DNA of 64,000 nt from Oopsacas minuta (Eukaryota; Animalia; Porifera). Both the position numbers and the translations under genes were made by a program. This document shows positions 20,829-64,000 of the stretch, one piece after another (within the stretch, counting starts at the first letter, position 1; every line of letters begins with the position of its first letter). The stretch is taken from assembly GCA_024704765.1 (NCBI GenBank), contig JAKMXF010000144.1, positions 124,001 to 188,000 on the forward strand. The letters run 5' to 3'. Under the pieces are notes generated by a model. It was not told the origin of the DNA. It saw only the letters and a program-made list of their open reading frames with translations, and did not search any database.

Positions 20829-21043
20829 AAGGACACAATTCCAACAGCTAATTATAGTGCAAAGATATTTACAATAAAGTACTACATATGATTGAACCGG
20901 AACTATAATATACTTAGTTCCTTTTCAAAGTGGAACTATTGAGAAAGTCAATCTACTTCTATGCATTCCTGTTTAAATATCTAAGGTATAAACAGGTTGC
21001 TATGCTATGATTGCTAATACATGATAAATAAGAAAAAAGTGAA

Positions 21044-21943
21044 CTATTTAGAATATACGAATGATTTTACATTTTTGTACCATTTCTCGAGTGCCACATC
21101 GTGTGCCATCATATCCTTGAATGTGTCTAACCCCTCTATACTAGTAATCACTCCATAAACTGACATGTCAGCTAAATTGGGCTCACTGCCACCTAGAAAT
21201 GGCCTGTTGTCACCTATTGCCTTCATCCACTTCCGACTGTCTTTATAAATACTCTCACGGACATCACCTTCGATGTGGTGACGCTTTATGAGACGCTTAG
21301 CAACAAAATACATCGACACAGCACCGATATACTTTCCAAGGAACTTTTGTGTCGAGGTGAATCCCTCTACCCTCATTATGTACTCAAAAGCCAATAAGGC
21401 CTCTCTGGGGCTACGGTATATGTTCACAGGAAATTTATGGACATATGTCTCGTCGACCCATTCACGCCACTTCGCCTCTTCACGCCTAGCGTCTAAGTTG
21501 TCGGCATTACCGTACGCTACTACGAATTTATTCATAATCTCCTTGACAACAGACTTACCCTGTTGGGATGTTACTGTTGGGAAATAAGACATAATTGTGT
21601 CGATGGGTTTCCCTGACACCCTCAGTGACTCTAGGACACTAATTATCAGAGAAGAGTCTCCAATTTGTCTGTTACCATTAATCATAAGAAGTGGCACCTT
21701 ATTATAGGAACTGAACTTCATTTGGCGCTTAAACACAGGATCCACTTCTACTGTCTCATAGGGGATATTTCTTGCGTCCAAATATGTCCTTACTTTACAA
21801 CAAAATGGACAAGTGTTATACTGATAAAGTGTTAATTGTCCTAAAGTGTGTCGCGGAGTGGATTCTTCACAAGTGACATGATTGAGAAAAGAGCTGAGAA
21901 GTATTTTGGAAGCATATTGGAAGTATGAAATGGAACTATGCAT
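21044..21943 (-). CDS. PTGES2: Prostaglandin E synthase 2 (mPGES-2, glutaredoxin/GST fold), intronless
   Basis: LTLYQYNTCPFCCKVRTYLD, YETVEVDPV, SYNKVP, GDSSLIIS, FLGGSEPNLADMSVYGV. Confidence 0.92.
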   Translation of the reverse strand: MHSSISYFQYASKILLSSFLNHVTCEESTPRHTLGQLTLYQYNTCPFCCKVRTYLDARNIPYETVEVDPVFKRQMKFSSYNKVPLLMINGNRQIGDSSLIISVLESLRVSGKPIDTIMSYFPTVTSQQGKSVVKEIMNKFVVAYGNADNLDARREEAKWREWVDETYVHKFPVNIYRSPREALLAFEYIMRVEGFTSTQKFLGKYIGAVSMYFVAKRLIKRHHIEGDVRESIYKDSRKWMKAIGDNRPFLGGSEPNLADMSVYGVITSIEGLDTFKDMMAHDVALEKWYKNVKSFVYSK

Positions 21944-22189
21944 TCTAATACGGAACTAAACATAAATAAATACAATTCACACATTTTAACACCAATTTAC
22001 AAGGTGTATATTTCTGTGCCACATTCCCGCGACACATTAATTAACACCTCTTATAACTACATGATGTAATAAATATACATAAATTTCTATGTTAAAGTAT
22101 TCCTAATTGAATTAAAATTCCATCTTTCATTCTTCTTTCCTTCTAACTAAAAATAAAAGGTGTGAATTAAGAGGCGATATTATGCCACT

Positions 22190-23291
22190 TCAGCTACCCC
22201 ATGGGGTGTCAAAATATATGAGTAACTCACCAGGTACATTAACAGTCCATAAGATCCTGTTTAACACATATCCCATGAAGGTAAATAACAATAACAACAA
22301 GGTAAGGAATATGAAGAATACAGGTATCAGAGGTTTAGGCATGACAGCTAGTAGAGGATACACCCACTTATCTGTCATAGTGAATACTAATAGCACCCTA
22401 TGTAAATAAGTAACTGTTATTGTTTGTTTGTTTGTTTGTTGTTTGTTGTTTGTTGTTTGTTGTTACTTACCATAACACATACAAACTAGCTCCAAAACAA
22501 ACCATATATGCAGTTGGCATAAGTGGCATATATTCATGTGGCATGAGGACACATTCTGAAAGTATCAAGACTCCTACAGCTGTATGCTACAAATAGGATT
22601 AATAAGTAACCATATTAGGTGTGAAAAGCGGCACACTTACCCACAAGTGGTTAAGAAGTGGTGGGAGATGGTCTGCTATGACTTTAGGCCATATCAGCTC
22701 TGGATCCACCCAGTATACTCCCCAGAAAGTTACCATCACAAACTATAATAGGAACCAAACATAAATTAGTTCCAATTACACACACAAAAATGGTGTGAAA
22801 ATAATCATACTATTCCTAACGGGAAAGCAAAACAACTGTAGATGAGGTGTGTCAGTCTCCGAAGCTTAGGTGTCAACGGACTAGCTGGTACCACATCAGT
22901 GAAGAACGCCAAAAAGAAGTACAAGAACTGTATCCACTAAAAATAACATATATAAGAGGCCCGTTACCATGGTTACCACAAGAATGTAGCTAACCAAATT
23001 AATATAAGTCAGGTATTTCCATCTGGCGCCAAAAGTCTGCCAACCAGTGAATGACGTGTTAATGACGTCAGCTGGAATTCCTTTAAATATAGTTGCCTCG
23101 TATGTTTTAATACCCACGTAGACAGCCAATGAGAAGCAATGGAATGTGGATTGTGTGAAAGGCGAGGCCCGTTTTGTGAGAGTATTTGTTATAGTCCCAG
23201 AAGGAACTGGACCCTCGTCTTCAGAACTGGAACTAGAATCCCATAGTTCCTCTTGATCGTCCAAACCATCTGGAACTAATTTAGTAGTCAT
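22190..23291 (-). CDS. AIG1: AIG1/ADTRP (FAR-17a) family membrane hydrolase, 5 exons
   Basis: Exons 23291-22995, 22936-22811, 22742-22641, 22586-22471, 22397-22190. RWKYLTY (catalytic Thr), FWGVYWVDPELIWP, NHLWHT (catalytic His), WVYPLL. An alternative in-frame ATG exists at 23318. Confidence 0.85.
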
Positions 23292-23398
23292 TCTAATTAT
23301 ATAATGTAAATGCCACATTTATTAATATGTCATAATTACAAAAATACACAAATAGGATATATTATACTCGTGGAGATAGATCCTGTTGTTCACACCTC

Positions 23399-23785
23399 TC
23401 ATAATACATTCCATTTCCCATTGTGTTGGTAAGCTGTGTACATTTTACGCGCCTTTTTTCTAACATTCTTGTCCTTATCATTGTACCTCTTCTCCAGAAC
23501 TTCTAGTATCCGATATTCCAGAGATTTGGGCGATCCGTCACCCAAGTTGTGGAGAGCCTGGTCACGTACAATTGGATCCTCATCGTCTGTCATCTCGATG
23601 ATCCGGTCCCAGAGCATGTCGACCTCCGCTAAAGTCTGACAGGGACACATCTCATGTAGTGCACGCCGCCTCTCCTTTGGGTCTGGATGTCTGCTGAGGT
23701 TCAGAATCTCATCGGGTGTCTGATCGCCACATTTTTTGGGCAGAGGTGGTATTACGAATCTGGAGGAGCGTTTCTTGTGTGCCAT
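23399..23785 (-). CDS. Small HEAT-repeat protein with CPC motif, 128 aa, intronless
   Basis: DPKERRRALHEMCPC, DEDPIVRDQALHNLGDGSP, DKDKNVRKKA, ending GKWNVL. Confidence 0.8.
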   Translation of the reverse strand: MAHKKRSSRFVIPPLPKKCGDQTPDEILNLSRHPDPKERRRALHEMCPCQTLAEVDMLWDRIIEMTDDEDPIVRDQALHNLGDGSPKSLEYRILEVLEKRYNDKDKNVRKKARKMYTAYQHNGKWNVL

Positions 23786-24071
23786 TTTACTATCAAGCTA
23801 AACTGTAATTGAATTCTGTAAATACTCAATATATTTATAGAAGAGAATATTCTATTAATAGACATATTCTAAAAATAACTATTCTATTAGTATTTGATTT
23901 TGTACTATTTTAGCCAATAAATGGCGTGAAAATTAATCATATTAGCTGAAGGGATATTTCTCCGTAACCATGGTAAATTCTAAGGAATTCAAACTATTGT
24001 AACTTATGTGAGTCTACTGCATTGATAGATAATTACATCATAGTATACATTATATAATAATTCCATTGCGG

Positions 24072-24724
24072 TTATGTGGTTGTTAGGGAAGAGAGCTGTT
24101 CTCTAATCTTATTCAAACCTAGCAGCATAGTGTCCAGGTTCTCTTTTGTCATTTCCAAATTGTGTACTTTTCTTTTTTCTCGACTTAGTTCCGGTTGTGA
24201 CACCTTTAGTTCCAATAAGCAAGTTGGTACTTGGAGTCTTGTTAACGCGTCACTGCCAGACTTCACATCGATCCTCCAATCAAATTCCTTTAATCTTGGA
24301 AGTGACACCTGATGGTTTGTCGCCTCTTCGCGCCACGTGGCCAAGTTCTGACCAATCGTCTTAGAGAGACCTGCTTTGAGATTTTCAGGGGTCTCTTCTC
24401 TGAAGTAGCCAATCAGGGCCTGGTTGTCCTGAGGGTTGCCGCCCAAAATCTCCTGGAATGTAAGTCTCAAAATGTGTCGCAGGACACAATGCGACACATT
24501 TCTATATCTAATTCAACAAATGAATAGTTTACCTTGATAATCTTTGCTAGTTCCAAAAAAACATCTTTTGCATCTTTAGTTCCAATTTCAAGTTCTCCAG
24601 CTAGCCATTTAGTGGCATGTTCCGACACAAACTCACCATTTGATTGTACAGCTGAGAGAAATGCTTGCTGACAAGTACATATTATTGTTTCTTTTGATTT
24701 TGATTTTAATAATAAATCTACCAT
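24072..24724 (-). CDS. COMMD9: COMM domain-containing protein 9, 2 exons
   Basis: Exons 24724-24533 and 24452-24072. LLKSKSKETI..CQQAF; QVSLPRLKEFDWRIDVKSGSDALTRLQVPTCLL; LDTMLLGLNKIREQLS. Confidence 0.9.
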
Positions 24725-24872
24725 TTTAACACCTAATTGGAACTAAAATATGAGTTTTAGGAAGGTTGGAATTTTGCGTATTCCGAGGTGGCAAGTGTGT
24801 CATATGGAAATGAGGCACATTATAGTATACAAACACATACACACAATAAGTAATCATGAATTATAGAATAAA

Positions 24873-24998
24873 CAGTAGACTCTGCCCAATAGGGTCACTC
24901 CAGCAGGATTAACCGTAACTATTTAACACTATTTGTATGGTTCTGTTTCTGACCAAGTGACCCTATGACCCTGTCAGCCTATTAAGCTGGGTCTACTA
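24873..24998. mobile_element. Possible degenerate Tc1/pogo-type MITE
   Basis: Imperfect terminal inverted repeats CAGTAGACTCTGCCCAATAGG versus the reverse complement of CCTATTAAGCTGGGTCTACTA. No clear TSD. Confidence 0.35.
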
Positions 24999-25186
24999 TA
25001 ATTAATATGAGACACTCACGACATGATGTCGCTCTGAGTATTAATATAGCATATAGCTACCCATAATTACATTCCATAGAACTAGAACTAACCTCATTCC
25101 TATTCTGGAACTAGTAACATTCACTAAACAGTCTTCTGAACAACAATTGAGAAGAGGGACACAATGCCAAAGATAAGACTCTGCTT

Positions 25187-25229
25187 AATAGTGTCACATC
25201 GGGACCAAGCCAGTGATCCGATTAACCGG
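25187..25229 (+). repeat. Short dispersed repeat R2 fragment
   Basis: GTCACATCGGGACCA.GCCA..TGA.CCGATTAACCGG is shared with 52331-52375; a weaker inverted relative lies near 31361-31428. Confidence 0.55.
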
Positions 25230-25487
25230 AGTATTCTATAGTCACCTGTCTCCCTTTGGAGGTGTTATGCGATCATTTAAAGACTCCAATGAACCTGGAA
25301 GACAATATATAGGCGTGGGTACAATACTGTCCCAGTAGTTGGCACAACACAAGGTTTGACACCTGGAGGAAGGAGGACAAATACCCTCTGTAACTTAATT
25401 ATCTCAAATGAATAACATATACTCAAGTTAATTAAAGGTTAATATAGAACAGCATACCAATGAAGTGTACGGGTTACCATGGTGATA

Positions 25488-28400
25488 TTAAAATATGGCA
25501 TCTTGTGAATATATAACTTTAGAGACACGTTTCTCTAAAGAATGTATAGCATTCTGTGACACTTTTGGACAATTTGATATGTCTATTTCTTTCAAACTGA
25601 GGAGACCTGATCGAATTGACTTGATGGCGTTGTCTGAAAGGTGTTTGCAGCCACTCAGCTTAAGTGTCCTCACATAGCGACACCCTTGTGATACATAGTC
25701 CATACTGTTGTCTGTTAATTGGATGCAATTTGATAGATCAAGCGACACCAGGAATCTAGAGGTGTGAAAATGTCATTAATCATTGATGATATGTAAAGTT
25801 AGTCAAATAGTAAAAGATGTGAGTATACACATATCTACAAACCAAATATGTGCTACTTACCCACAGAAGAATGCCACATTCTTCACAGCTGTATTATTAA
25901 TCCCTCGGCAATATGACAAATCCAAATAACTCAAATGTTTCGCGTTAGAACAAAACTTCTCAATACCGAGATCTGTCAAATTCACACATTCTGAGAGTGA
26001 TACATATTTGAGGATACTGTACTCCCCCAGGGAAGCGATCCCTGAGTCTGTTATGTTACACCCCGAGAGGTTTATGCCACTGAGTTTTGAAAGAGAGCAT
26101 ACCAATTCTACACCCGCGTCGGTAAGGAACTCACAATAACAAAACGATACATATGATAAATTAACGAGGTGTTGATTCATTCTTAACAACGTGACGTCAC
26201 TAATACGCACTAAATTAGTTAGTGTCAGTTCCATAATGCGTGTCTTAGAGTCCCCTTCGACTACCTGACGGATACCAGCGTCACCTATCTTGATACAATC
26301 TGCTACATTTATGATCTAAAACAACCTTAATTACTATAGCAGATTATCGTAGTTATGTAAAATGAAGTAACTGGAACTATTAATGATTTGTGCCATTTCT
26401 CACCTGTAAATGTTTGAGGTGTTTCAGAGCTTTGAGGGAAAGGTCTCCCAGTCTGCCACAATTCGCCACATGGATGTGTGACAACTGGACACATGCTTGT
26501 GCCAGTGTTTTAAGTGCCACATCAGTCACATTTTGATTATCCTCCAATTTGAATACTTTCAATTCTCTGTTTTGAATTGCAAGAGCCTTAACACCTAAAT
26601 CAGTGATAGATCGACAACCAATCAGATTCACGTGTCGCAAATGGTGACAGGTGGCAGAGAGCCCAATTAATGCATCATCTGATAGAGAATGAATATTTGA
26701 TAGAATTATAGTTTGGAGTTGAGGTGTCGCTTTCCCGAGGTATACGAGATAATCAGGTGTTAATTGGACACAACCAGAGAGATCCACGTGGACTAGCTTG
26801 TGGCAGCCTTTTCCCTCTGCCATGTGTAGCATACCCTGTAGAATCATAAAATTAATAGCGACACAATAATGTGGCACAAAAGGTGTCAGTTGTCTCTTCG
26901 CCTTCCTCGTTGAGGGGTGTAGCCAAATACCTAGGAGGTAACCATGGAAACGGGACAACACGTTAGGGAGTTGGTGAATATATTCATGTATGGAATGCTA
27001 TGATTCATGATATGTTATGTCCCCTGTACAAGGGTGTTAAAATATGAATAATCAACCTGACTAGTATTCGTGGTAATATAGTATATACATAACTGAAACT
27101 GAAACTAACCTGAGTAGTGAATTCGAGACAGTGCGCAAGGGATAGGAACCTTAAATTGATACAGTGTCTCGACAGAGCTCTAAGAAGATTGTCCCCACAA
27201 TCCGTGTACGAGATATTCAGGTACAATAGACTGGGACAGTTCTGACAGAGAGACGCTAGTGCCTCGTCGTTTATTGAAGGAATCTCTGATAGATTGAGGT
27301 CTTGTAGATTACGACATGAGGACACATTCTTGAGACCCACTTTAGTTATGGAATAGCAGCCTCTGATACTTAAGTGGCCGAGGAATGGACGACACTTTGA
27401 AAGGACACTTGACAGAGCTTTGTCTGTCACTTGTGATCTGAATTGTGATAAATTTATGTGTCTCCATAGAGAAGATTCCTGGGTGAGAAGCTTCCAAGCT
27501 CGAGACACACGAGCACACCTTTAAAACAAACAAATAAACAAACAAACAAGCAAACAAACACTCACCTAGCAAGACTCTTGAAATCAAGGTGTGAAAATAT
27601 CTTTGCTACCAGCTGTTTACCATCTACCATGTGTCCCTCTAGTCTTGTATCGAACACAACCACATTAACCACTAACTTCCCAATTTCATCCACAACATTA
27701 TCAGCTGTTTCATCATCAGCTGGGTAGTCTGGGTCACTCGTCGTTTGTGTCATTAGCCTCTTCATCCATAGACTCTGTTTCCTGGATTGTCTGGCATCCA
27801 CCCGCCATGCCCTGATAACAGCTGATAGCAGTCTATTCTGATCTATAGAGTAGAGTATTACTGCTCCTTTAGCATGCTGTCTCGTCACGTAGCGAGACCA
27901 CTCCAACCACTTTGAAAACACCTATAACAATATATCATGATAATACTGCCACTTTTAATATAGTTTCATATTGGTATGACATATTGGAACTAACCCTAGC
28001 ACATAGTTTCTTATTGAATACACTACGCGCCATATGGAACCTAATCTGCTCAACTCGTCTCTTCTCAATCTGTCTAACTCTCCACTGTCTGAACCCTAGC
28101 ATACTATCGGTCAATAGCTTAGTCTTGTAGTGAGTATAAGCTGTCATATACATATCAGCTGATGGCTCTAAAGCCTGCTCTTCCTTCTCTATTAACCGGA
28201 TCAAGCCTAGGGTGTTAAAATATGATTAATTAACCCGCGGAAATGTTTTGAATTTTTATGAAATTCAAATTTTACACAAATCACCTCCTTCAGTTCGGAC
28301 AGGAGGAGGTGAAGACACATTTGTAGACTCATAATATCAAGTAAAAATGGCTCAAAGTGTCTAAAAATAGAAGTTGTACCTTTCGGGAATATTCTCTTCT

Positions 28401-28626
28401 GAAGAGTTGCATCTTCTGGTACAAACATATTCCAAGAATAAGCTCCTTTTCTGGTCTTTAGTTCAGATAATCTGTCCCCCAAATAATCCCAAGGTTCTGG
28501 TGGTAGGTTAGCAACCAGTCCGGTTACTAAGCATTCGAAAATATCACAAAATTTTGTGTCGCTGACATATTTGAGTAATGACTGTTCCGCTTCGAAGAGA
28601 TAATTCGATCCATTTATATCTGACAT
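25488..28626 (-). CDS. FBXL13: F-box/LRR protein 13 (dynein regulatory complex subunit 6), multi-exon
   Basis: N-terminal dimerisation-like segment (IFECLVTGLVANLPPEPWDYL), F-box (KIFSHLDF..SRAWKLLTQESSLWRHINLS) and many Cys-containing LRRs in ORFs 27005-27508, 26380-26961, 25857-26234, 25488-25748. Not all exon boundaries resolved. Confidence 0.85.
26898..27055 (+). repeat. Dispersed repeat R1, copy C (inside a FBXL13 intron)
   Basis: Matches 8285-8450 directly and 4823-5087 inverted. Confidence 0.8.
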
Positions 28627-28811
28627 TCTAACTGGTTAAGATATGTAATAATTTTCACACCTTTTAAATAAGATAATAATCTGATAGATCGACACATTTG
28701 ACACCTTTTCACAGATATGTATCATGGGTAACCAGATACTTAGATAAATGGTACAAATAATTGGTTTAAATGAATCCCATATTTTAGTAGGCGAGGGGCA
28801 AGACCTTATAG

Positions 28812-28900
28812 CAGCGGTTCCTAGCAGGGAGTCCATGGAATCCTTGGTGGTCCTCTGACGACAGCAGGGGTCAACAGGTGAATAAGGTTAGGAACCGCTG
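28812..28900 (+). mobile_element. hAT-like MITE, 89 bp
   Basis: 14-bp TIR CAGCGGTTCCTAGC / GTTAGGAACCGCTG (13/14). Same family as 16965-17081. An 8-bp TSD is not convincing. Confidence 0.7.
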
Positions 28901-28924
28901 CCTCTGACCAGTTCCCCAATCAAC

Positions 28925-29035
28925 TTGTACTGTTGCGTGTCAGAATTGCTACCTGTAATCCGATTACACCTCATGATTTATGAATATCCATGGTACCAGT
29001 AATACAGGTAGCAATTCTGACACGCAACAGGACAA
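28925..29035. repeat. Long inverted repeat (28-bp perfect stem, 45-nt loop)
   Basis: 28930-28957 is the exact reverse complement of 29003-29030; extends to 33 bp with one mismatch. Confidence 0.9.
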
Positions 29036-29072
29036 CAAATACGCGCCAAGGAATGTGACAAATCTAAAATAA

Positions 29073-31833: not shown

Positions 31834-31961
31834 AAAATGCTGTAATTTTATTGGTTACAAATGAGTAATTGAAAATGTAAATTGGAACTAATTAAGGATC
31901 CACTACGACACAATTCTCCCCAATTTCCATTCTGTGTATTTCATTTTGTATAATTGAATTA

Positions 31962-38822: not shown

Positions 38823-38920
38823 ATTATATTTGTATATATTATGAGTGTATCTTTATATTCATATTTTCACACCTAATGAGAAACATGAAATAGTTGGCAT
38901 CTCATTTAAGATTATTTTAG

Positions 38921-52874: not shown

Positions 52875-53027
52875 TGGCTAGCCGATCACAAATTTGGAAT
52901 TATATGTCACTATTTTTCTATATTTATCACTTTATTAGTTCCAGTTTACTTTTTATAAGGTGTCAAAAGTGTCCCTAAGTTATTCCCATAAATTAATATA
53001 CCATTATACACATTCTAGCTTGTTGTT

Positions 53028-53600: not shown

Positions 53601-53695
53601 CCGACACAATATTAGAATTTATTAAATTTCATATTTTAACTTTTGCTATAAATATTTGAGTTAATTACGCACTTTTTTGTAAACTTAGAATTCCA

Positions 53696-54205
53696 ATGTC
53701 AACACCCAGTAACCAAGTTCCCAACATTCCAGAGGAATACCTTAGCTACACAGTTATACACAACTATTCGCCAAACTCTGAATTGGAACTAAAGGATGCA
53801 TTAAACCAGAACTATGACGTGATACTTCTGAGTGACATCACTCTAGGCAAGCGAGTTTGTAATTGGGTACAATTGGGGAATATTCTACACAAATTCGGTG
53901 TCATTTCCGGTGTCTCAAGTTTGTTACTAAATATAGCTACACAAACAGCTGATTGGTTGACGGGCTGTATTAGCGTTTGTTCTATTATTAGTATCACTAT
54001 ATATAACACAGTTTGGCGCCCAGATATTATGTCGTGTTACCAGCTTGACACCAGAGGTGATTTTGTGGCGCAAATGCCACTTTCAAGTGTGAAAAGTCAG
54101 AGTTTGATGGTTCTAGTAAAGCAGGACGATAAGTACAGGCGATTTCTACACAATCTGATTGGCTGTTTCTTGTTAATCCAGTTTGGACTTAAACTTCGAA
54201 ATTAA
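53696..54205 (+). CDS. TMEM11: Mitochondrial transmembrane protein 11, intronless
   Basis: YTVIH, ELKDALNQNYDVI, WVQLGNILHK, YQL, VLVKQDDKYRRFLHN. Confidence 0.88.
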   Translation: MSTPSNQVPNIPEEYLSYTVIHNYSPNSELELKDALNQNYDVILLSDITLGKRVCNWVQLGNILHKFGVISGVSSLLLNIATQTADWLTGCISVCSIISITIYNTVWRPDIMSCYQLDTRGDFVAQMPLSSVKSQSLMVLVKQDDKYRRFLHNLIGCFLLIQFGLKLRN

Positions 54206-54279
54206 ATAATTACTTTAATATTTATTTTCAGTTTAAAAGGTGTTAAAATTATAGTTCCATATAGATTAAATATAGTATA

Positions 54280-57200
54280 ATGAAGCGGAACAGATCTCGT
54301 AAGACATGGGACCAATCTACTACTGAAACTAAACAAGCATTCCTTGTACAACAACCCGTAACTAAGCTAAATAAGGAGTACAATTTGATACGTGAAGATA
54401 TCCCACCTCGTTATGGAGACTATTTGACACAATTGGAACGCAAAAATAAAGAGAAAAGGGAACTGAATCTGATCCAAGGGCCTAAGGATCCAAGGGAGGA
54501 GGGGTTCAGTTTATATTTTAACGGGACGCATGCTCAGAAAGGGCGCGCTCGTGCTAAAACAGGCGGGCAAACTGATGCCACTAAAACTAAACCGAATAAG
54601 GTAATGTTTATAACCATGGATTAATGACGAATAAAATATTTGGGATGAATAATTGAGCCACTTTAAAAGTGGTTTGTGCCACTTTATATCATTTAAACTG
54701 GGCCAATTCTATTTTAGATCCTTAACGACACAGATAGCCTACTCCCTCAGACTGCGCCAAATAAAAGAAAGGGCTGGAAAGTGGTCTCAAATGTGTCGCT
54801 TAAAACTGAGGACGGAAACCACTTAAAAGTGGAACTATCACCTAAAATAACAGGACTATATGAGGATGATTTTGAGAATGGTGTCACGAAACACGCGCCA
54901 ATAAATGTGTCCTCAGGTGGCAGTGATTCAGAGGTATGCCACTTCTGAATTGCCCAATAAGAATGAGTTAATTTTTCTATTTTAGATAAGTGACCACTGT
55001 GAAGAGGATTTGAACACTTCTATCAGTAAACCACTTCATAGAGCGCCACAAGAAATGTGTCGCGTTCCACCTGCAAGTAGCAGAGGACCATCTCGGACCA
55101 CTTCTACCTGCTCTGTCACTAGTGTCCGCGTGAGACAAGATTTGGATGAAAGTGTCGCTGATTTACAGAAAGCCATATCAGCCATACAAAAGGAAAATTC
55201 TGACATATTTGTGAGTTTATGGTTATTCATATCTTCACACCTTTTAAACTTGTCTATAGTACAATGAATCTCCTCTGCCTGATGATCAGCCAATGAGAGA
55301 CAGTCTTGAGACAACATTCATCGACACAGAGTGTGCCACCCAACCACTTAACACCTCCCAGGATTACTGGCGGAAACATTCTATGTTTGGAGAAATTGAT
55401 ACTTTAACAGGTGTCGCCGTACAACTGGAAGTGTCATCTAACTGGGGACACAATTCACATCTGGGTCTGACTGAAGTTGAATTCTTTACGACACAAAATA
55501 AAAAGGTGTGGCTAAGTGGTACACGTGTTAAAGTACAAGGACACATCGACACTTTTGAAATCGACCACATTCTGAATGGAAAAACAAATACTACTCATGA
55601 CAAGCATATGTGGTCAGCTGGGTATAGACCACATAGGAGGGTTAGGTTCCATTTCTTAGTTCCAATTGGAACTAAACAAGAAATGGGAGGTGTTAGGATA
55701 TGGAACTATAACAAACCAAGCTGTCTAGATGCTGGTATCAGAAATGTGAAAATTATGGTAGAAAATGTGTCGGTCTGGGAAGGAGAGGTTCCGAAAGGTT
55801 CTGGAACTAAATCAAATGATTACGCATATTTGGTTAGAATCAACATTCCTGAGTCGTCTCCTAGCAACGCTTCTATGAGTGATTCTGACGTAAGTTTGCC
55901 ACCTGAAAAACCTAATTTGATTCGTCAATCAAATCAGCTGACTAAGAAAAGGATTCCTTACAATCCCTTCAAGTCGCCAAATCTTGTAACAACCAGCGAG
56001 CCCACTACGCCACTTCAGAAGACCACCTCGACACAATATAAGCCTCACACCTCTCCCCAGCTGACTAATAACCAAGCTAAATTACATCATCAGTTGTCTG
56101 ATCAATTAGCCAATCAATTGTCTTATAAGACGACCAATCAGCTTGCTATCAAACTATCCAATCAACTGCCAGAAAAATTAACCAATCAACATTCTGTGAA
56201 ACTAATCAATCAGCTGGTCAACAAACCTACCAATCAGCTGATCAACAAGCTACCCGATCATTTACCTAACCAGCTGATTAGAAGAGCTGCTCCTAGATTA
56301 AAGCAGTCAGTCAGTCAGAATTTTTTGCTAGATTATCTCTTCTCTCCTCCACCCAATCAGCTGTTAGAGAAGTCTCACAGTGAAACGGAACTAAGTAAGT
56401 TCCTGTCAGCTGATAGTCCTACTTGTCAGGCGCCAAAATATGGCAGAAGATCTCAGATGAGGCTTGGAACAGCTGTTACCGGGATAGCCCGCCCAGAACT
56501 CCCAGATGCTGAGCTGACTGATATTACTCATTTATACAATTCTAAAAATAGATCTAGTCCTATTCTCTCTCATTCCAGAGCGTATCCTAGCAACGCGCCA
56601 TCTCTTAAATCCAGCCAAACAGAACCAGTCATTTCAGGCGCCAAAGCTGTGCCATCTTTGGAAGAAATGTTACAATCATTGGCCACATTCCAGCACTCCC
56701 ATAGAGGGAGAATTGTGGACCTGGAAGAGGACAGTTTGGACCAATTCCTAGAGGAGCAGTCTCGCACCAGAACCTCCCCTCTCAAACTGGAACCAATATT
56801 AGAACCAGAATTCGTGATACCTGAATTACCCTATGGCAAGTCCCTGTCCTTTATCATAACCTCCACCTGGGGGGACCGATACTATTTGGGTCTGAATGGG
56901 ATAGAAGCGTTCTCTAGCAATGGGAGTAAGATAGAAATATGTGATATAGTAGCTGATCCTCCAGACATCAATATCCTACCGGGGTAAGTTATTATTTATT
57001 ATTTTATTGTTTGTATTCATATTTTCACACCTTTAGATACGGCTCAGACCCTCGTGTTGCTCAGAATTTGACAGATGGTGTCAACAGGACACGAGACGAT
57101 CTCCACATGTGGCTGACACCATTTACACCTGGACAGCCCCACTTGATCGACTTGGAGTTTTCGTCACCTTCCAAACTGGCCATGTTAAGGATTTGGAATT

Positions 57201-58669
57201 ACAATAAATCTCGTATCCACTCACATCGTGGCGCGCGACACATTCGGATAGAGCTAGATGGCACACCAGTATTTGTGGGAGAAATTACGCGGGCAAGTGG
57301 TGGACTACTTGGTGGCACAGAATCTTTTGGCGACACAATTTTATTCACAGAAAATGAGAATATTCTGGCGCTCATTTCTGAGAATGATGAGACATACCTT
57401 GGAGACCTGAGTGACGAAATGGAATGTGACTTAGATTGTGTCATCGATGATTCATTTGTGTCGCGACCTGACACCTCTGACAAGGAGAGACCTTTTACCA
57501 CAGCTGGAGTGGCACACGAAGTGGCAGATATTAGTTTAGGTGATGAAATCGTGGCACAAAAAGTATCATTGTGTCTCTTATCAAATTGGGACACATCTGG
57601 ACTCATGGGGCTGACTGGTGTGACACTTTTGGCGCCTGACTCTTCTCAAATTGAATTAACACCTACCCAACTTGTTATGTATAAGGTAGCACAAGATGGC
57701 ACACGTGTGCCACTTAAAGTCGACACAAACCACCTATTAACCGACAATTTAACGCAGGAAGAGGAGGGTATGCTTGTTTGGGAATTAGAAGATGGTTGTC
57801 AGACACTTTTGGAAATTATTCTCCCAGGTCCTCTACCACTTGGTGGCATATCAATATGGAACTATAATCTAACACCTGAGGACACATATAATGGAGTTAT
57901 GCAACTTGACATTCTATTAGATGACACATTTCTGTCAGATTACCCGTTTATTTTAAGAAAGGCGCCAGGACACTTGAGATACCAATTCGGACAAGAAATT
58001 ATGTTCTCAGAGGACTCAACGACAACTTTCACACCCGACACAATCGAGCTCAGTTCACTCATGCCACTTTTCACACCTGAATTAGCACCTACTGGATTCG
58101 TTGTCGAACTACAGATCCTCTCCACTTGGGGTGACGTCTATTATGTCGGTTTAAGTGGCATACAATTATTCGACACAAACGGACACAGTATAAATGTGTC
58201 GCCTAAAAATGTGGCAGCTTTTCCAGAGAGTATAAATATTCTAGAAGGTGTCGAAGGGGATCTAAGGACACCTGATAAATTGGTCGATGGAGTACACCTC
58301 TTAGAAGATGGCACACATTCGTGGCTCGCGCCACTTCTCCCAAATACAACCACTTCTGTATATTTCATATTTGATACTCCAAATTCCTTCTCTGCCATTA
58401 GAATATGGAACTATTCTAAGAACCAAGACAGAGGTGTTAAGGAATTCTCTATCTTGATTGATGACTTAATTGTGTATCATGCCACAATGCCACCTGCCAA
58501 GCCACTTGACACGCAAAGTGACACAGTGGCGCCTTATATGGCCCTCCTACTTGACCAATCACGTTTTGAGAACTCCTGCGACACATCTCGTGCCACTTCA
58601 GAGGTGATGTTGTGTGGTGACCCAATGTGTCGTCCTTTCACAAGTCTAACAGAATACCAGAAATTCTAA
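54280..58669 (+). CDS. KATNIP: Katanin-interacting protein (KIAA0556), 5 exons
   Basis: Exons 54280-54600, 54718-54933, 54986-55210, 55260-56983, 57037-58669. EEGFSLYFNG; repeated modules SNWGHNSHLGLTEVEF, STWGDRYYLGLNGIE, SNWDTSGLMGLTGV, STWGDVYYVGLSGIQ, IRIWNY. Confidence 0.92.
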
Positions 58670-58881
58670 AAATAGTACATTATCATACTTGTTGCTAAAG
58701 TCAATTCAAATAAAGGTCTTACAACTATTAAGTAGCAGATTGTGTCGTCTAGGGGACACATTTGAGGGTGTTAAGTGGTAATGTGTATCTAGAGACAGTT
58801 TTTATATAATTCCTGTTAAAAAATAATCTCAACTCATGACATAAAGGTGTGAAATACTCATATTAATAGGTGTTAAAAATA

Positions 58882-59968
58882 TCATATAATACATGAATAA
58901 CCGTAACAATAAGATGCCTCTAGGTCCCGTGTGGCACCAGGTGGCAGAATGAAGGGGTCCAGACTGATATTAGGATCCATGGTGAGAGGAAGTGACTCAA
59001 GTTGTCGCGCCTTCTGGAGACACTGTGCCACTAATGCCACTAAAGCCTCCTCCACATTTATATAATCTTTCGCACTCGTCTCAATGTAATCCAATAAATG
59101 TCTATCCCTCAATAACTAGAAAAATACCACATAATTGCGTCATCGACGACACAATTCACACCTTCAAGGAGTGGTTCATATATAAATAGGTACCCAAGAT
59201 CCTCCTCTTAGGTGTGAAGTTAATCATATGAACTAACCTCAATTTCCGAAGGATCTGTTCTTGTTTCCAAATCACATTTGTTACCGATTAATATCATCGA
59301 AGCATCAGTGCTACTATAAATAGAAATAAATCGTACCACTTGACACCTTTTCTAGCCATATAATAGTGGCTTAATGGCCTCTTTTTAGAAGGCTCAAAGG
59401 TGAGAAAATATACATATACTCACCCTTTCTCCTCAAACTCTCGTATCCAAGTGTTACACACACTCTGAAAGGTGTTTGGCTGATTGATATCAAATACGAA
59501 CAGGACTCCGTGAGCGTCCCTGAAATATGTCCTGGTGAGTGACATGAACCTCTCCTCCCCAGCTGTGTCCCATAGCTGTAACTACACAATTGGAACTATA
59601 AACTGGAACTATAGATAACTCTTCCACGCTAAGGAAGTGGTTAATAAGCAGATGGTAAATTTGGTTACAGTAATTGCAAAAATGATAATATTATGTGGCA
59701 TAATTGTGTCATAACGTATCACCACCTGTCGTGAAGTGGCATATATATTACAAAATGGGTTCCCATTGTGTCGTATTAGTGGCAGAAAGTGGCAAACCTT
59801 AATTTTCTTGGTTCCTATCTCTATGTCTCTTAAGTGGAATCCAAATCCAATTGTTCCAGCTGTTTTTTCATTGAAAGTGTTACCAGTTAATCGACCAATC
59901 AGAGAGCTCTTCCCAACCATCTTGTCACCTAATACTATTATCTTGAAGCTGTAGTCATATGTGTCCAT
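58882..59968 (-). CDS. Divergent Rab-family GTPase, 4 exons
   Basis: Exons 59968-59798, 59581-59424, about 59313-59238, about 59118-58882. GDKMVGKS, TIGFGF, WDTAGEERF, GNKCD, ETSAK; C-terminus YCYGYSCII. Confidence 0.85.
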
Positions 59969-60057
59969 TGTGTCACTAAACTATAGTTCATGAATTTACA
60001 CCTATTTTTCTGTATAAAATATATTAGATTCCAATACTCGTAATTCGGTGCTAGGAT

Positions 60058-62868
60058 ATGGCAGAGGTGGATATAAATCTTAACACTTTGTCGGACAAGT
60101 TAAAAACTACAAAAGTGTCGACACGACACTATAAAACCACTCGTGCCACTTCTGATCAAGAGAAAAGACGGAAAGTTTCATTAGCCAATCAGCGTTGCAA
60201 ACGAAGTGATCTTTTTGATTTAAGGCGCCAAATAGAACCACTTCTAAAAATAGAACATGAATATACCCTAATGTGGTCTGAGTGGTTTCAAGATGTGCCA
60301 CAAGACTTCGACACTTTATGGCGGATGATAATATGTCCAAATGGCAAACGCTCATTAATAATTGCAAAGTCTGGTGTCACAAAAGTGTACTCAAGAAAAG
60401 GTGTCCTTGTTAACACCTTTCAAAGTGGTCTACCAGGTGGAAATCGTAGTTGTTACTCAGGTGTCACGGTGTTAGATGCCATATTCTGTCGGGACCAGAG
60501 AACATACTTCCTGTTGGATATAATGACATGGAATGGACACACACTTATAGAGTGTGAAACAGAATTCAGGTTAGTTACACAAATGTAGAATTGGTATGTC
60601 ATCATGTAGCCAGACCTCCAATCAAATTACAGGATTTAATTTTTGGCAAAATGTGGCACTTAACCACTTCTAGGACGATTCAGAGGCAGTCGATATTGCC
60701 ACTTCTGAGTGCCACACCTATTCAGATCCATTTCTATATTGGTAAATTTCTAAAAATAGAATATTTTAGGTTTTATTTTTTGCGCGCCAAACTTGAAGAA
60801 ACAATGGAACTAACAGAACTGAGTTCAACCAATCAATTCATCTTCACTCTTTTGATGAATTATCCATGTCAACAGGACACATTATGTGCAATTATGTCAC
60901 ATTCTGTGCCATATGGCATAGATGGTTTATTGTTCTACCACCTGCAGGGACACTATACACCAGGAGAGACCCCTCTAGTCCTCTGGATGACACCTAATAT
61001 GTCACCTGACTCTATTGGGTAAGTTCTCAAAATAGAATTTGGGATTTATCCGTTTGTGAGGGAAATTCCTTTTAAATGTGTTAAAATATGAATATTGTAT
61101 ATTCATGTGAGGATTACATATTCTTTGTTCTCCTAAGCCAATCAATATACAGCCTCAGAAAGGTGTGAAAATGTGTATAAACCACCAAATAACTTTAACC
61201 AATAAATCTCAGCTTACATACTAATATACTTTCAAATCTGATCGGTAAACACATTTCCTACCTGTCTTAAAAAGTGTCAATATTTGTGACACAATATCCA
61301 ACCACCTGGCGATCAGGTGTTTGTCTACCACTTAAATGTGCCATTCCAGGAGAGTGTCGCTGGATAGAGCTCTGCCGGTAGCATAATACCACTAACACCT
61401 TTCATTAAATGTACTATCCTTATACCAGCACAAACAGACATAGCAAATGAATACACAACACAATTAGCACATTCTGTTTATTTTCTTATTCAGTTTGTTT
61501 ACTTTCGTGTTTACGTTCTCTTGTTTATCATATATACGATCTAACTTCTTGTTAGAGTCGTCTATCTGGTCTCCTAATTGAAGAGCCATCTCGCTAAGAA
61601 TATCCAATCCGTTGTCTATTTGATCTAAGTTCTGGTCTACAACAGTTTTTGGTTCCGGTTTCCCCCTAGCAACCACTGGAACGCTGGATTGTAGCTTAGG
61701 AATTTCTTTATTTGCAGGCTGTGTGCTATTTTCAGAATTTTTCAGTGTAGACTTCTCTCTTTTGAAATAATTCACTACTCCACCGAATACTGTTTGTATT
61801 TGTGTCAGTTCCCTAAATGAATATGATAAAGTGGCAGAGTGGTCTTTATAAATATCCCAGTGGCGAGGTGGCAGGGATTGGAATGCCCGCCCTGTCTTAT
61901 GGAACCGAAACCAATGAATATTTGACAAAACTAAAGTCGATTTTTTGGAAAATTATCTGAACTGAACTTCCGCGGCTAATTGGAACTGAAACTATTCCCA
62001 ATTAACAGTGTCGAATACATGTCACTATTATTAACACACAAGGTAACAAATAGTGTCCTATAATAAACTACAAGGTGTAAAAATTGTGTCGCGCTGCCAC
62101 TTACCTATCAGCTTTCCCACAACTGCTATCGATATTATCCAAATTAACTTCAATATTGCCCAGCTGTTCGTTTTGTTCATCTAACATTTTCCCCGCCTCA
62201 GCCCCTGACTGGTAGGCCTCATCAATGTGTCGGAGACTCCTAGCAGTGCTTTCTGCCATTTTCTGTTCATACATGCTAATCTTTATTCGGCATTCCTCTG
62301 CTTCATTACGGTATCCCTCGTAGCTCATTGCTATATATAGTAATAGGCTTATAAGTTATATAAATAGACAACAATTGGCGCTCCTAGGGGGAAATGGGGC
62401 ATTTGTCTAGGTGTGAATATCCTGGAAGTGGCTGAGAGATCTTGGAACCGTCACATGGTCACAACGGTCTGAGACGATCAGCGGATTCAATCCTATATCT
62501 GATAGGCTAAATTGGACGTTCTAGTTTTTAGTGCCATCAATGACAACTAGGGAACCACTTTGATATGGAATAGGACAACAAGAGAAGTGGTCGTGCCACT
62601 TCTCTTAATAATTTCTAGAAATTTATGGCTGATTAATATATATGAAACATGTTACTAAATTTAGAATTGTATTTGCCTAATATCTGAAGTATAATACTTG
62701 TATAGAATAGTGCCAAGTGAAGAGTTCTTATCAAGCCACTTCCCTGACAGCGACACAATACACCACTCTAAGAAAAAGGCGTGTAAAAAGGGACACCCAA
62801 TGGAGACAGATGAAATTCAAAATGGAACTAAGTTGGTTCCAGATTCTGAGATTATGAGCGACCAATGA
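60058..62868 (+). CDS. SNUPN: Snurportin-1, 3 exons; last intron hosts SNAP29
   Basis: Exons 60058-60569, 60770-61018, 62706-62868 (phase 2/2). IBB-like QEKRRK..QRCKRSD, LMWSEW, CPNGKRSLI, LPGG, LDIMTWNG, DGLLFYH..HYTPGETPLVLW. The last exon is inferred from phase match, acceptor and AATAAA at 62870. Confidence 0.8.
61464..62328 (-). CDS. SNAP29: SNAP-29-like Qbc-SNARE, 2 exons, nested antisense in SNUPN intron 2
   Basis: Exons 62328-62105 and 61812-61464. ESTARSL..EQNEQLGNIE; QIQTVFGGVVNYFK; second SNARE motif IDNGLDILSEMALQLGDQIDDSN. No palmitoylation Cys cluster. Confidence 0.85.
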
Positions 62869-63293
62869 AAATAAAGTAAACATTTTTATTGAATTAATTA
62901 TTCTATTTTTAGAAACTTGTGTTGCTATGGTGATTTCTCTGGAATGTTTGTATGTGAATTCTCAATTCTCTCTACAATCTTTCTCAAGAGACGGGAATCT
63001 TAAATAAAATACAAAAATGTATCGATTTGACACGTGAATATTGACACTAATTATAGTAACAATGTATTGAATATTTCCTTTATTGCCTAATTCGAAAGTG
63101 GAACGTTTGGAGAGGCTAATGGTCCAATTATTGCACTCATAGGGGGACATTTAGAGGGACAATGGTCGACTGAAATGCAAGTGTTGGGTCTTTATCTACA
63201 TATAGCATATTTCTTCACTTGTTATTAATTTACTAACTAACATTTCTGGCCAATCAAAAGCTTTAGCTCGTGACAGCTGTGCCATTCAACCAC

Positions 63294-64000
63294 ATGGCGG
63301 GTAATTTCTGGAAGAGTTCACACTATGAGGAATGGCTCCTGCACCCACAGGAATTGGAACTAGGCCGCAGAGAGGATTGTGAGGTTCTGACTAAGGAGCA
63401 ATTATTGAAATTACATATTTTCTACGCTAATTTTATACAAACATTAGGAGAACATGCTCTTCTGAGACAACAGGTATTATGTGACACATTTGTGACACTT
63501 TTTGGTGGCACAAATGTATAGGGAATGTGTCCTAGGCTTCTGCCACTTTTTACGATTAATTAATTAATTTAGTTCCGGTTGAATTAGCATTAAATGCACA
63601 TAGTTCCATATAATAACACTTTCCTCAAGGTAATCGCTACAGCATCAGTATACTTCAAACGATTCTATGTGAGGAACTCTCTGAGATCTGTAGACCCCCT
63701 CCTCATGTCCCTGACCTCTATACACCTAGCTGCCATAGTGGAGGAGTGTGACATGCAGACCGGCTCTAAATTGACACAAGCATACTCGGGAGCTGTCAAA
63801 TCAAAATTCAGAGACTATTTCAGTGTGGAATGCCCCTTCAATTATCAGACGGTTAGTATAAACAGAACTAACACCTTATAGTTCCAGTTTAGTGGTATAT
63901 GATTAGGGATATGGGTATAGGCTTCTGTGGTTCATTTTTGTAGTTTATAGTTACAGTTATAGGTTCTGGAATGTGAATTCCTTCTCCTCGAAATGATGGA
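63294..64000 (+). CDS. CCNC: Cyclin C (truncated by the window end)
   Basis: Exons 63294-63473, 63630-63851, 63963-64000. MAGNFWKSSHYEEW, LRQQ|VIATASVYFKRFY, DPLLM, VLECEFLLLEMMD. Confidence 0.93.

Follow-up and report, generated by a model that had tools for sequence, protein, structure and literature searches.

Conserved, helically spaced GTGKC/GMCAC words in a glass-sponge genome: candidate binding sites of a putative DNA-binding protein

The pentanucleotides GTGTC and GTGGC, counted on either strand (the family GTGKC/GMCAC), occur 573 times across the window, by which is meant the whole 64-kb stretch of DNA analysed. We put at about one half the probability that these words are selected binding sites of a putative protein that binds double-stranded DNA cooperatively. 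Sites are kept beyond the needs of the encoded proteins, they recur at helical spacing and they have altered proteins; together this favours a DNA-binding reader over a mutational quirk, and a purely mutational attractor is not supported.

Results

Abundance of the words in the window

There are 522 words in positions 14001..64000, and the density rises from 3.6/kb (1-14000) through 7.4/kb (14001-21000) to 10.9/kb (21001-64000), where an order-1 Markov model predicts about 2.8/kb. A preliminary description of this DNA had put the regional excess at about 10-fold; the excess itself is real, but its size is about 4-fold over 21-64 kb and 2.5-3.7x for coding DNA when the null takes codons into account, and a value of about 9x to 10-fold is reached only in the top exon and solely against base composition. 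The individual counts in that description were reproduced closely: 44 words in 57001-58680, exactly as claimed, 16 in the RASSF intron 51226-52446, again as given, 5 rather than about 4 in PLCB 8521-10200, and 51 and 44 CpGs in the two exon samples for which similar counts of about 45 each had been stated. Enrichment among the 16 GTGNN words is restricted to GTGTC (3.9x) and GTGGC (3.8x), with 1.7x as the highest value of the rest, so the degenerate word GTGKC was correctly chosen. The strand symmetry claimed earlier is perfect, with 236 GMCAC and 234 GTGKC on the + strand of 21001-64000, and orientation relative to the coding strand is balanced (130:106, p=0.13); this symmetry points to a reader of the duplex and not of RNA. 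Words are found in all three reading frames, at 11.8/kb in ORFs and 9.1/kb outside them.

The word-rich stretch (14001..64000), in which most genes carry 8-26 words/kb, is not the contiguous regional domain first proposed. The pattern is specific to genes and segments, with densities from 0 to 37 words/kb, and word-poor islands lie within the stretch. The densest segment is the C-terminal exon of KATNIP (DUF4457; 57011..58669, + strand), with 44 words at 26.5/kb. A second dense block at 34001..40000 (13.5-18.5 words/kb) holds LisH-WD40, INTS15, TM2 and CRELD-like genes, and the single-exon XPO4 ORF (40233..43631, - strand) carries 32 words (9.4/kb). The PLC-beta ORF (8502..12020, - strand), a word-poor control, is near chance at 4.5/kb; an NHL-repeat ORF inside the dense stretch (31962..33230, - strand) has only 1.6/kb, and a segment of KATNIP ORF1 (56001..57000) has only 3 words in its kilobase. 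This last segment, poor in GTGKC, is rich in CAGCTG, CCAATCA and GGCGCC, and so shows that separate words hold separate territories; GTGKC is a family apart from the other words of the genome, and locally the most abundant.

Shuffle tests and word flanks

In the ORFs beyond 14 kb, synonymous shuffles that keep protein and codon usage give 96±8 words where 236 are observed (z=17), and codon-order shuffles give 63±7 (z=24). A codon-preserving shuffle had been named beforehand as the refuting test, and the excess persists in it. After GACAC comes A-W-T-T, and before it often CG; the context of GCCAC is T-G-CCAC-T-T, that is, AAGTGGCA on the opposite strand. Of the A/T-tract flanks initially reported, an A/T-rich 3' flank is seen, but the two forms prefer different flanks. 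Flank information is about zero beyond ±3 bp of the word. An origin as copies of a dispersed repeat or transposon was rejected, as the flanks share no similarity beyond the word and the contexts are unrelated.

Conservation of single words among glass sponges

The same genes are word-rich or word-poor in four other glass-sponge assemblies. When 173 5-mers were ranked by identity in all species of a four-species alignment (about 69% nucleotide identity), GCCAC/GTGGC came first (38%) and GACAC/GTGTC third (34%), compared with 10% overall. Identity of words is 51% in coding DNA, against 12-16%, and 15% outside it, against 5-7%. The conserved footprint is the exact 5-mer, without extension into the flanks or the A/T tail. 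Synonymous third positions in one region are 78% conserved within words and 39% elsewhere (Fisher p=4e-12), and the codon-stratified odds ratio for synonymous conservation in words is 6.5 (p=3e-9). The protein is no better conserved at word sites than elsewhere, its conservation there being average. XPO4, aligned under protein guidance, served as an independent replicate: 27 of its 32 words are common to relative L008, and its synonymous third positions are 63% conserved within words and 18% outside (p=4.5e-9).

Of 87 single changes between orthologues at the degenerate position, 58 are A<->C transversions by which one family member becomes the other, so that GACAC and GCCAC substitute for one another at orthologous sites, and only 2 are C>T; these in-family swaps point to readout of the bases themselves. 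None of the 34 differences listed for a relative about 96% identical hits a word. Polymorphism between two haplotypes is weakly and not significantly lower in words (1.25% versus 1.57%). About 60% of the words in the aligned region are isolated, and their conservation is 37%, compared with 44% for phased words.

Density is a heritable property of genes, kept across species and neighbourhoods by KATNIP-2, CRELD, WD40 and PLCB. The densest KATNIP exon has orthologues with 23-32 words/kb in four other assemblies; at 76-78% nucleotide identity, these match the codon column of 28-29 of its 44 word starts, and 14 word columns are common to all five species. The exon keeps its density in a different neighbourhood (relative L005), and the kilobase homologous to 56001..57000 is GTGKC-poor in all species compared; poor and rich sub-genic segments are kept between species. 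The LisH-WD40, INTS15, TM2 and CRELD-like genes have 20-36 words/kb in L008, L009 and L010. PLCB is also poor in L006 (6.2/kb) and L007 (6.9/kb), and the Ank/SOCS gene beside it has 11 words/kb in the window and 27 and 23/kb in these two relatives. NHL genes, whose location varies between species, have 4.8-9.9 words/kb in L005, L009 and L010. EPS15 exons are word-poor in the window and rich in L006 and L007.

Effect on the encoded proteins

The words have altered the proteins encoded. Dipeptides produced by words number 3.5-4.9 per 100 amino acids in KATNIP of glass sponges and 1.28±0.43 in 94 outgroups, a 3-4x excess over these other animals. In this measured sense the early statement that the words override coding sequence is supported. 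XPO4 shows a moderate shift and word-poor PLCB none; the excess is confined to glass sponges, being absent from 94 and 119 outgroup orthologues. The commonest word translations are DT, VS, VA, AT and xPL, much the bias already noticed (DT, VA, VS, PL). Separately, some other words match protein motifs, for example TGGAACTA, which encodes WNY in KATNIP.

Helical spacing and arrays

Spacing periodicity, a check put forward in the preliminary description, gave a clear result: same-orientation pairs peak at 8-13 bp (64 versus 20 expected, P=8e-15) and again at 19-22 bp (34 versus 14 expected), with a trough at 14-18 bp. Head-to-tail pairs therefore lie one and two helical turns apart, at 9-13 and 19-22 bp, mixing GACAC and GCCAC freely. 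The peaks recur in 8 of 8 data sets, although the most distant species offers only 4-6 such pairs, and the pattern is absent from control 5-mers located outside microsatellites and free of overlap with the words. Compared with 1-14 kb, the word-rich part has a stronger 10-11-bp periodicity of WW dinucleotides; no consistent period of nucleosome scale was seen.

Most of the words in the window are isolated or paired with unrelated spacers. Three-unit head-to-tail arrays occur outside long ORFs at 50866..50892 (+ strand, GACAC, 11-bp step) and 49999..50024 (- strand, 10-11-bp step), and within coding sequence at 58481..58505 (+ strand, KATNIP exon) and 39525..39550 (- strand, CRELD-like ORF). 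In the spacer after KATNIP, the three units (GACAC, GCCAC, GCCAC) of 59019..59040 (+ strand) are all identical in the 4 of 4 aligned species. A 22-bp tandem repeat at 51496..51550 (+ strand) has a GCCACTT word in its unit. Another three-unit array (59768..59793, - strand) precedes the snurportin ORF by about 270 bp, and a two-unit GTGTC pair (59961..59975, + strand) lies about 85 bp upstream of its start; in the place of this pair relatives have an expanded array, of 22 bp x8.2 in L001, 10/21 bp x7-15 in L004 and 23 bp x2.3 in L003.

Altogether 25 word-bearing tandem arrays were found in 10 loci, only 2 of them, both short, in the window. Periods of 20-23 or 61-63 bp characterise 17 of these 25 and 13 of 68 other arrays (p=2.5e-5), the words of relatives expanding into 20-23-bp minisatellites. 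Word-bearing arrays grow and shrink at the same site between species, and several are placed a short distance upstream of a start codon (snurportin in three species, PAXX, INTS15). Because duplication also makes words in such minisatellites, part of the spacing signal could be mutational.

Discussion

A putative reader of the words

In the model that we favour, GTGKC/GMCAC would be the 5-bp core recognised in glass sponges by a putative sequence-specific protein or small protein family, which would accept either A or C as the second base of GMCAC and favour an A/T-rich 3' flank. Binding would be cooperative, with the molecules head to tail along a single face of the helix, and for this reason sites would stand one and two turns apart. 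Selection would retain many sites over particular genes regardless of exon, intron or spacer, which would bend codon choice and even amino acids. New sites may arise by local tandem duplication, as 20-23-bp minisatellites that later decay into phased pairs, and arrays just upstream of starts may act as promoter-proximal clusters. The role is likely at the level of chromatin, where binding would keep a set of ancient genes, probably with broad expression, open, insulated or active in a very compact genome. Reading by a protein, its cooperation and its effect are all putative steps of this model.

The words have sequence features expected of a homotypic cluster of protein-binding sites: a defined core of limited degeneracy, base-specific conservation of individual sites, indifference to orientation in the duplex and a preferred spacing. 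The early suggestion of a dense code read by a chromatin or DNA-binding protein agrees with the conservation of the 5-mer, the A<->C swaps, the symmetry, the helical spacing and the indifference to coding status and frame; the other suggestion, a domain-specific mutational attractor, is not supported, as density follows a gene to a new neighbourhood, PLCB stays poor beside a rich neighbour in three species and sites seem to be under purifying selection. Against binding sites, five base pairs is little for a specific reader to recognise and the conserved footprint stops at the 5-mer, 10-30 sites/kb over whole exons is far above ordinary transcription-factor sites, and polymorphism is only weakly lower in words. 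The words may resemble THAP or NK-2 sites; the exact 8-mers were absent from the literature searched.

Alternative explanations

Mechanics encoded in the DNA sequence, as in PATCs, is an unlikely alternative, in which a G/C core and A/T tail every 10-11 bp would bend DNA or set nucleosome rotation and the "reader" would be the histone octamer or supercoiling rather than a sequence-specific protein. The spacing at one and two turns, the A/T-rich 3' flank on each unit, the stronger WW periodicity and the origin and expansion as minisatellites of about two turns would all be expected from it. However, only 2 of 16 GTGNN words are enriched, the footprint is the 5-mer and not the tail, isolated words are conserved nearly like phased ones, the in-family swaps indicate base readout and a consistent nucleosome-scale period is not seen. 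For the PATCs (periodic An/Tn clusters) of C. elegans, an origin from minisatellites reshaped to fit the helical repeat has been reported, as has a protective effect against gene silencing (bioRxiv 10.64898/2026.08.08.743475; PMC4947018). Like GTGKC words they are abundant and strand-symmetric, have a 10-bp helical periodicity (here in pairs and in array periods of 20-23 bp) and mark particular genes, which for PATCs are germline-expressed ones. They are, however, A/T tracts without a specific word, in introns and spacers and not exons, for which a mechanical action is proposed, whereas GTGKC is a specific G/C-rich 5-mer, conserved base by base, no less dense in exons than in other DNA, and has altered proteins. 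A wordless A/T tract confined to non-coding DNA is thus not what is found here.

It is also improbable that a biased DNA process without function makes and keeps the words, old resident DNA simply filling up; this is the earlier mutational attractor made genome-wide, through birth and spread of minisatellites, through mismatch repair or gene conversion with a bias toward the word, or through a mutation rate that is low in particular contexts. Bacterial very-short-patch repair, which shapes word frequencies, is a precedent. Such a process would account for arrays that expand and contract in place, for unequal overall densities among lineages (19.6/kb in L001, compared with about 12/kb over the corresponding part of the window), for the EPS15 exons and for the poverty of young- or mobile-looking DNA (MULE transposase 1.9/kb, NHL paralogues 1.6-9.9/kb). 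It would not explain why PLCB, an old gene, is at chance in three species beside neighbours 3-5 times richer, why density moves with the KATNIP exon, why poor and rich sub-genic segments are conserved and why different words hold different territories, nor would repair bias yield head-to-tail helical spacing of isolated, non-identical units.

A signal in transcripts, such as a splicing enhancer, an RNA-binding-protein site or a small-RNA target, seems very improbable. Words are dense in the exons and introns of transcribed genes, the genes of this genome are arranged in compact chains on the same strand and trans-splicing occurs in glass sponges (PMC10282587); but orientations are balanced, spacers are equally dense in words and arrays stand beside genes in both orientations. 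A by-product of base composition, codon usage, dipeptides or dispersed-repeat copies is hardly credible, being refuted by the synonymous shuffles, the flank information, the density outside ORFs and a dipeptide excess specific to glass sponges, even though the amino-acid sequence carries about one third of the coding excess (96 versus 63 in the two shuffles) and some other words coincide with protein motifs.

Likeness to known systems

If the words are indeed sites of a DNA-binding protein, the CGATA clusters of BEAF-32 and the DREF sites of Drosophila, which serve insulator and housekeeping-promoter proteins, offer a likeness: a clustered 5-bp core, a multimeric reader and densely packed, broadly expressed genes. 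They differ in being much sparser and placed at promoters and domain boundaries instead of through coding exons, and in lacking a fixed helical head-to-tail spacing. PhoB/OmpR boxes and the Plasmodium SPE2 arrays bound by PfSIP2 are tandem direct repeats at 10-11-bp spacing, with a 5-7-bp core and A/T-rich spacer one turn apart, which tandem domains or dimers read head to tail; these elements are local, of the operator or subtelomeric type, and do not cover whole gene bodies. Bacterial words (HIP1, DNA uptake sequences, Chi, KOPS) are likewise short, far above chance and present in coding DNA in all frames. They are, however, single exact words, genome-wide, often palindromic or strand-polarised, with known machineries (uptake, RecBCD, FtsK), whereas GTGKC is degenerate, strand-symmetric, gene-specific, phased and animal; a genome-wide iterated word of the bacterial type was rejected on the degeneracy of GTGKC and its uneven density of 0 to 37 per kb.

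A T-box element (AGGTGTGA half-site; GGTGT core, A/G before, GA after) was also rejected: the C required after GACAC for GGTGTC is found in about 20% (A 51%, T 24%), GTGGC cannot fit the core, and AGGTGTCA accounts for a minority, 26 of about 370 GACAC/GTGTC words. GTGKC density shows either no correlation or a negative one with E-box, CCAAT and CRE words, and GTGKC has no fixed spacing to other words save a weak link at +7 to +11 bp to the T-box-like word. Those other words of the same genome (T-box-like AGGTGTKA, CAGCTG, CCAATCAG and TGACGTCA) are likewise short, spread over exons, introns and spacers and common to glass sponges, and their 5-mers are also among the most conserved in the four-species alignment.

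The word in coding and non-coding DNA

The density of GTGKC/GMCAC (GTGTC or GTGGC on either strand) rises from 3.6/kb in positions 1-14000 to 7.4/kb in 14001-21000 and 10.9/kb in 21001-64000; an order-1 Markov model predicts about 2.8/kb. The hand counts of the preliminary description were correct for 57001-58680 (44 words) and 51226-52446 (16), and a recount of 8521-10200 gave 5. It is clear that the degenerate word was well chosen, since among the 16 GTGNN words only GTGTC (3.9x) and GTGGC (3.8x) are enriched, the runner-up reaching 1.7x; the strand symmetry was also recovered, with 236 GMCAC and 234 GTGKC on the + strand. The gene names proposed at the same time were borne out by Pfam for PLC-beta, the EH domains of EPS15, KATNIP (DUF4457), the CRELD-like, importin-alpha and NHL-repeat genes, snurportin, PAXX, INTS15 and TM2, and by PF28490 for XPO4.

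The two cores differ in flank preference: GACAC lies in (G)(C/T)GACAC-A-W-T-T and GCCAC in T-G-CCAC-T-T, which is AAGTGGCA on the opposite strand. Flank information is zero past about 3 bp from the word and the surrounding contexts are unrelated; these are therefore short words, and their derivation as copies of a longer repeat is ruled out. The CG of CGACAC/GTGTCG accounts for 106 of the 1012 CpGs in 21001-64000 (genome CpG observed/expected 0.60); a CpG is also kept in several words of the genome's vocabulary, a point of possible importance should the genome be methylated.

Two nulls were applied to the ORFs beyond 14 kb, where 236 words are observed. When synonymous codons were permuted inside each ORF, keeping protein and codon usage, 96±8 words were expected (z=17), so that the excess outlasts an amino-acid- and codon-preserving shuffle; permutation of codon order gave 63±7 (z=24). 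The coding excess is thus 2.5-3.7-fold, reduced yet persisting, and the roughly 10-fold excess first claimed is not upheld in coding DNA. Words occur in all three frames and on both strands (commonest translations DT, VS, VA, AT, GV and RH), and their density in ORFs (11.8/kb) was judged equal to that outside (9.1/kb). Together, the two shuffles and this equal density rule out an artefact of composition or codon use.

Gene-specific density

The enrichment had been described as a regional domain spanning 21000-64000, but it is not a contiguous chromosomal domain; density is gene-specific and poor islands lie inside. The NHL gene of this "dense" region has 1.6 words/kb, and the bin 56001-57000, inside the first KATNIP ORF (55293-56987), holds 3 GTGKC words along with 7 CAGCTG, 6 CCAATCA and 4 GGCGCC-type words; GTGKC occupies other territories than the E-box, CCAAT and CRE words do. 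A 24-bp tandem repeat is found in this GTGKC-poor kilobase at 56199-56260, and its counterpart in two loci of other glass-sponge assemblies, L001 (9043-9221) and L004 (8418-8832), is a 24-bp x7.5 or 36-bp x11.5 array with E-box and CCAAT words, that of L001 lying inside a called ORF.

Syntenic loci were found in four other ENA assemblies (ERZ25072740, ERZ25766962, ERZ25072730 and ERZ20067936) through their KATNIP, PLC-beta and XPO4 orthologues; 63-86% protein identity and conserved gene order led us to take them as glass sponges. The KATNIP C-terminal exon (57011-58669 in the window) carries 23-32 words/kb in all four, including locus L005, where it is rich despite different neighbour genes and flanks of 1-5/kb. 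In three species the density in PLC-beta stays close to chance (4.5, 6.2 and 6.9 words/kb), while the Ank/SOCS gene adjoining it has 11, 27 and 23 words/kb in the same three. CRELD (20-31/kb) and a WD40 gene (30-36/kb) are rich everywhere examined. Some lineage drift is also seen; the EH exons of EPS15 are poor in the window and carry 12-23/kb in two relatives.

Word-poor sequences include a MULE transposase fragment (L009, 22866-23402; 1.9/kb) and the NHL paralogues (1.6-9.9/kb). The position of the NHL-repeat genes varies by species (window 31962-33230; L009 14032-15249, between XPO4 and CRELD; L005 14197-15429 and 17464-18702; L010 16707-17945 and 21505-22743), and they look like young or mobile paralogues. 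In the tandem importin-alpha duplicates of the window (44681-46419 and 47218-48458), GTGKC and other words recur at corresponding places, such as 45252/47336, 45734/47779 and 45455/47539.

Conservation of words and constraint on synonymous sites

Conservation in the KATNIP exon was scored on a codon alignment guided by protein. Of the 44 window words, 28-29 share their start column with three species of 76-78% nucleotide identity and 17 with a species of 66% identity; 14 word columns are common to all five species. In a four-species nucleotide alignment of 52980-63900 (MAFFT, faster mode; about 69% identity), 51% of the word 5-mers in coding DNA are unchanged across the three other species, compared to 12-16% of non-word 5-mers with equal G+C. 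Outside long ORFs the values are 15% and 5-7%; in such DNA the nucleotide alignment may be biased towards matching words, a bias that is absent from the protein-guided alignments of XPO4 and KATNIP. When the 173 5-mers that occur 25 times or more are ranked by conservation, GCCAC/GTGGC comes first and GACAC/GTGTC third, the remaining top ranks being taken by other vocabulary words.

The constraint extends to synonymous sites. Where the amino acid is identical in all four species, third positions are unchanged at 64/82 sites inside words (78%) and at 346/897 outside (39%; Fisher p=4e-12), with a Mantel-Haenszel odds ratio, stratified by codon, of 6.5 (p=3e-9). Protein-guided alignment of XPO4 repeats this result (63% conserved inside words and 18% outside, p=4.5e-9). 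A preference of the words for more conserved protein segments was considered and ruled out, the identity to 14 outgroups being 0.36 vs 0.395 (not significant).

At the degenerate position, A<->C exchanges make up 58 of the 87 orthologous single changes and C>T only 2, while transitions dominate at the non-degenerate positions; the two cores, GACAC and GCCAC, thus act as alternative states of a single site.

Two weaker sets of data agree with this conservation. The first comes from "organism B", of which a 2024 run (run X5) matches the window at about 96% identity over 55000-60900; this makes it either a close relative of the source species or a population that has diverged from it. Of the 34 differences listed between the two, none falls in a word, where about 2.4 would be expected among the 29 of the fully listed stretch (p ~0.08; 40 of 225 differences were listed). 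Polymorphism between the haplotypes L001 and L002 is 1.25% in words and 1.57% outside, a difference in the expected direction that is not significant.

Helical spacing and tandem arrays

Spacing was compared to the 30-70 bp background; figures are for the window alone, because orthologous loci do not give independent counts. Words in the same orientation are paired at 8-13 bp 64 times (20 expected, P=8e-15) and at 19-22 bp 34 times (14 expected), with no excess at 14-18 bp. The effect is weaker for opposite orientations (33 and 19). All eight data sets repeat the pattern of same-orientation pairs, although the most distant species has only 4-6 of these, and control 5-mers that neither overlap the word nor lie in a microsatellite show no such pattern. 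The two cores mix freely, with 20 and 19 pairs in the pure classes and 25 mixed.

The window contains seven three-unit chains, three of them inside coding ORFs, and phased chains are found at 1.15/kb in ORFs and 1.01/kb outside. All three units of the non-coding triple at 59019-59040 are identical across four species. Two units lie just upstream of the snurportin start (59961-59975), where the counterpart in other loci is a 22-bp array x8 (L001), a 10/21-bp array x7-15 (L004) or a 23-bp array x2.3 (L003). Across ten loci, 25 tandem arrays carry the word in their unit, and a period of 20-23 or 61-63 bp is found in 17 of these vs 13 of 68 word-less arrays (p=2.5e-5). Arrays also lie immediately before the start codons of PAXX and INTS15, and others between convergent gene ends or in introns. 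No consistent periodicity of word positions was seen on a nucleosome scale: the periods of single loci range over 134-269 bp and most are not significant.

Effect on encoded proteins

The words had also been said to bias dipeptides. In five glass-sponge KATNIP exons the four commonest in-frame word dipeptides (DT, VS, VA and AT) reach 3.5-4.9 per 100 residues, compared to 1.28±0.43 (maximum 2.56) in KATNIP of 94 other animals; the reversed dipeptides are at 0.7-1.1 vs 1.35. In XPO4, where the words are one third as dense, the shift is moderate, with a word/reversed ratio of 1.5-2.2 vs 1.11±0.39 in 119 outgroups; these came from an exhaustive protein search, the word-indexed search having matched glass-sponge orthologues only. 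Word-poor PLC-beta shows no shift (1.1-1.55 vs 1.30 in outgroups). The claim thus stands for KATNIP and, moderately, for XPO4, and the DNA word has reshaped proteins in proportion to its density.

Discussion

The simplest joint account of these results is a putative reader of the DNA duplex, which would make base-specific contacts and bind cooperatively, head to tail; we give it about an even chance (roughly 0.5). It is suggested by the strand symmetry, the indifference to coding and frame, the base-by-base conservation of a 5-mer that tolerates degeneracy at one position, the synonymous constraint, the helical head-to-tail spacing and the heritable, gene-specific density. The words may resemble the THAP site of the P element, NK-2 sites and the CGATA clusters of BEAF-32. 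Arrays beside start codons might act as promoter-proximal clusters. Further, since the words spread over the whole bodies of old resident genes and are sparse in transposon and young-paralogue DNA, they may serve in licensing, insulation or anti-silencing in a genome whose spacers are very short. More tentatively, a small vocabulary of such words across gene bodies, exons included, of which GTGKC is the commonest here, could form a putative and hitherto unrecognised sequence-encoded gene-marking layer, read by cooperative duplex-binding proteins that license or insulate a defined set of old resident genes in a very compact genome; selection on the DNA code would then be strong enough to override synonymous choice and to rewrite dipeptides in conserved proteins.

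Alternatively, the words could have a purely mechanical role, like that of the periodic An/Tn clusters (PATCs) of C. elegans. The periodicity and a minisatellite origin would fit, but base-specific conservation and exonic location would not, and we regard this as rather unlikely. Functionless molecular drive also seems improbable; array dynamics and lineage drift are what it would produce, whereas the conservation of both rich and poor genes and the phasing of unrelated units are hard to reconcile with it. That the words act as a signal in RNA is very improbable given their strand symmetry, and a compositional artefact is already refuted.

Neither of the two published papers on glass-sponge genomes mentions words of this kind, the exact word 8-mers were not found in the searchable literature, and a search for glass-sponge motif papers gave nothing relevant. 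New here are the exact boundaries of the family, the interchangeability of its cores, the synonymous-site tests, the helical spacing, the word minisatellites and the dipeptide shift. If a DNA-binding reader exists, glass sponges show an extreme regulatory or architectural load in coding sequence (10-30 selected sites/kb, synonymous-site constraint and measurable rewriting of proteins), which bears on overlapping codes ("duons") and on the placement of control information in very compact animal genomes. If the gene-marking reading is also true, this would be a second code over the genetic code, at a density undescribed in any animal. Synonymous sites are not neutral in these genomes, so dN/dS and molecular dating are affected, and hexactinellid protein alignments contain DNA-driven dipeptide biases. 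The phased-array design is simple and could be used as a probe to fish out the putative reader protein.

Other words of the genome

Word families of like kind in this genome are the T-box-like, the E-box/CCAAT and TGACGTCA words. GTGKC words show no fixed spacing to TAGTTCCA, CAGCTG, CCAATCA or ACCACTT; the T-box-like word has a small excess 7-11 bp downstream of them. The T-box-like octamer TCACACCT occurs at 34256, 38867, 55235 and 57025 (+) and at 27587 (-), in sense orientation with ATATTT before it, and by eye several ORFs or exons begin 20-80 nt downstream of it. Instead of a T-box site it could be a signal for an acceptor, an outron or a core promoter.

In the KATNIP exon (57011-58669) and its orthologues, a DNA word coincides with a protein motif: TGGAACTA codes for (I)WNY(N), which is repeated in DUF4457. 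Relatives have tandem arrays based on TAGTTCC (L001 16951-17162, 22 bp with CGACAC x9.6; L004 20114-20340, 12 bp x19). Finally, many contigs of the source runs break or enter unrelated sequence at 57005-57036, 59397-59419 and 59541-59580, as short dispersed repeats about 30 bp long might cause.
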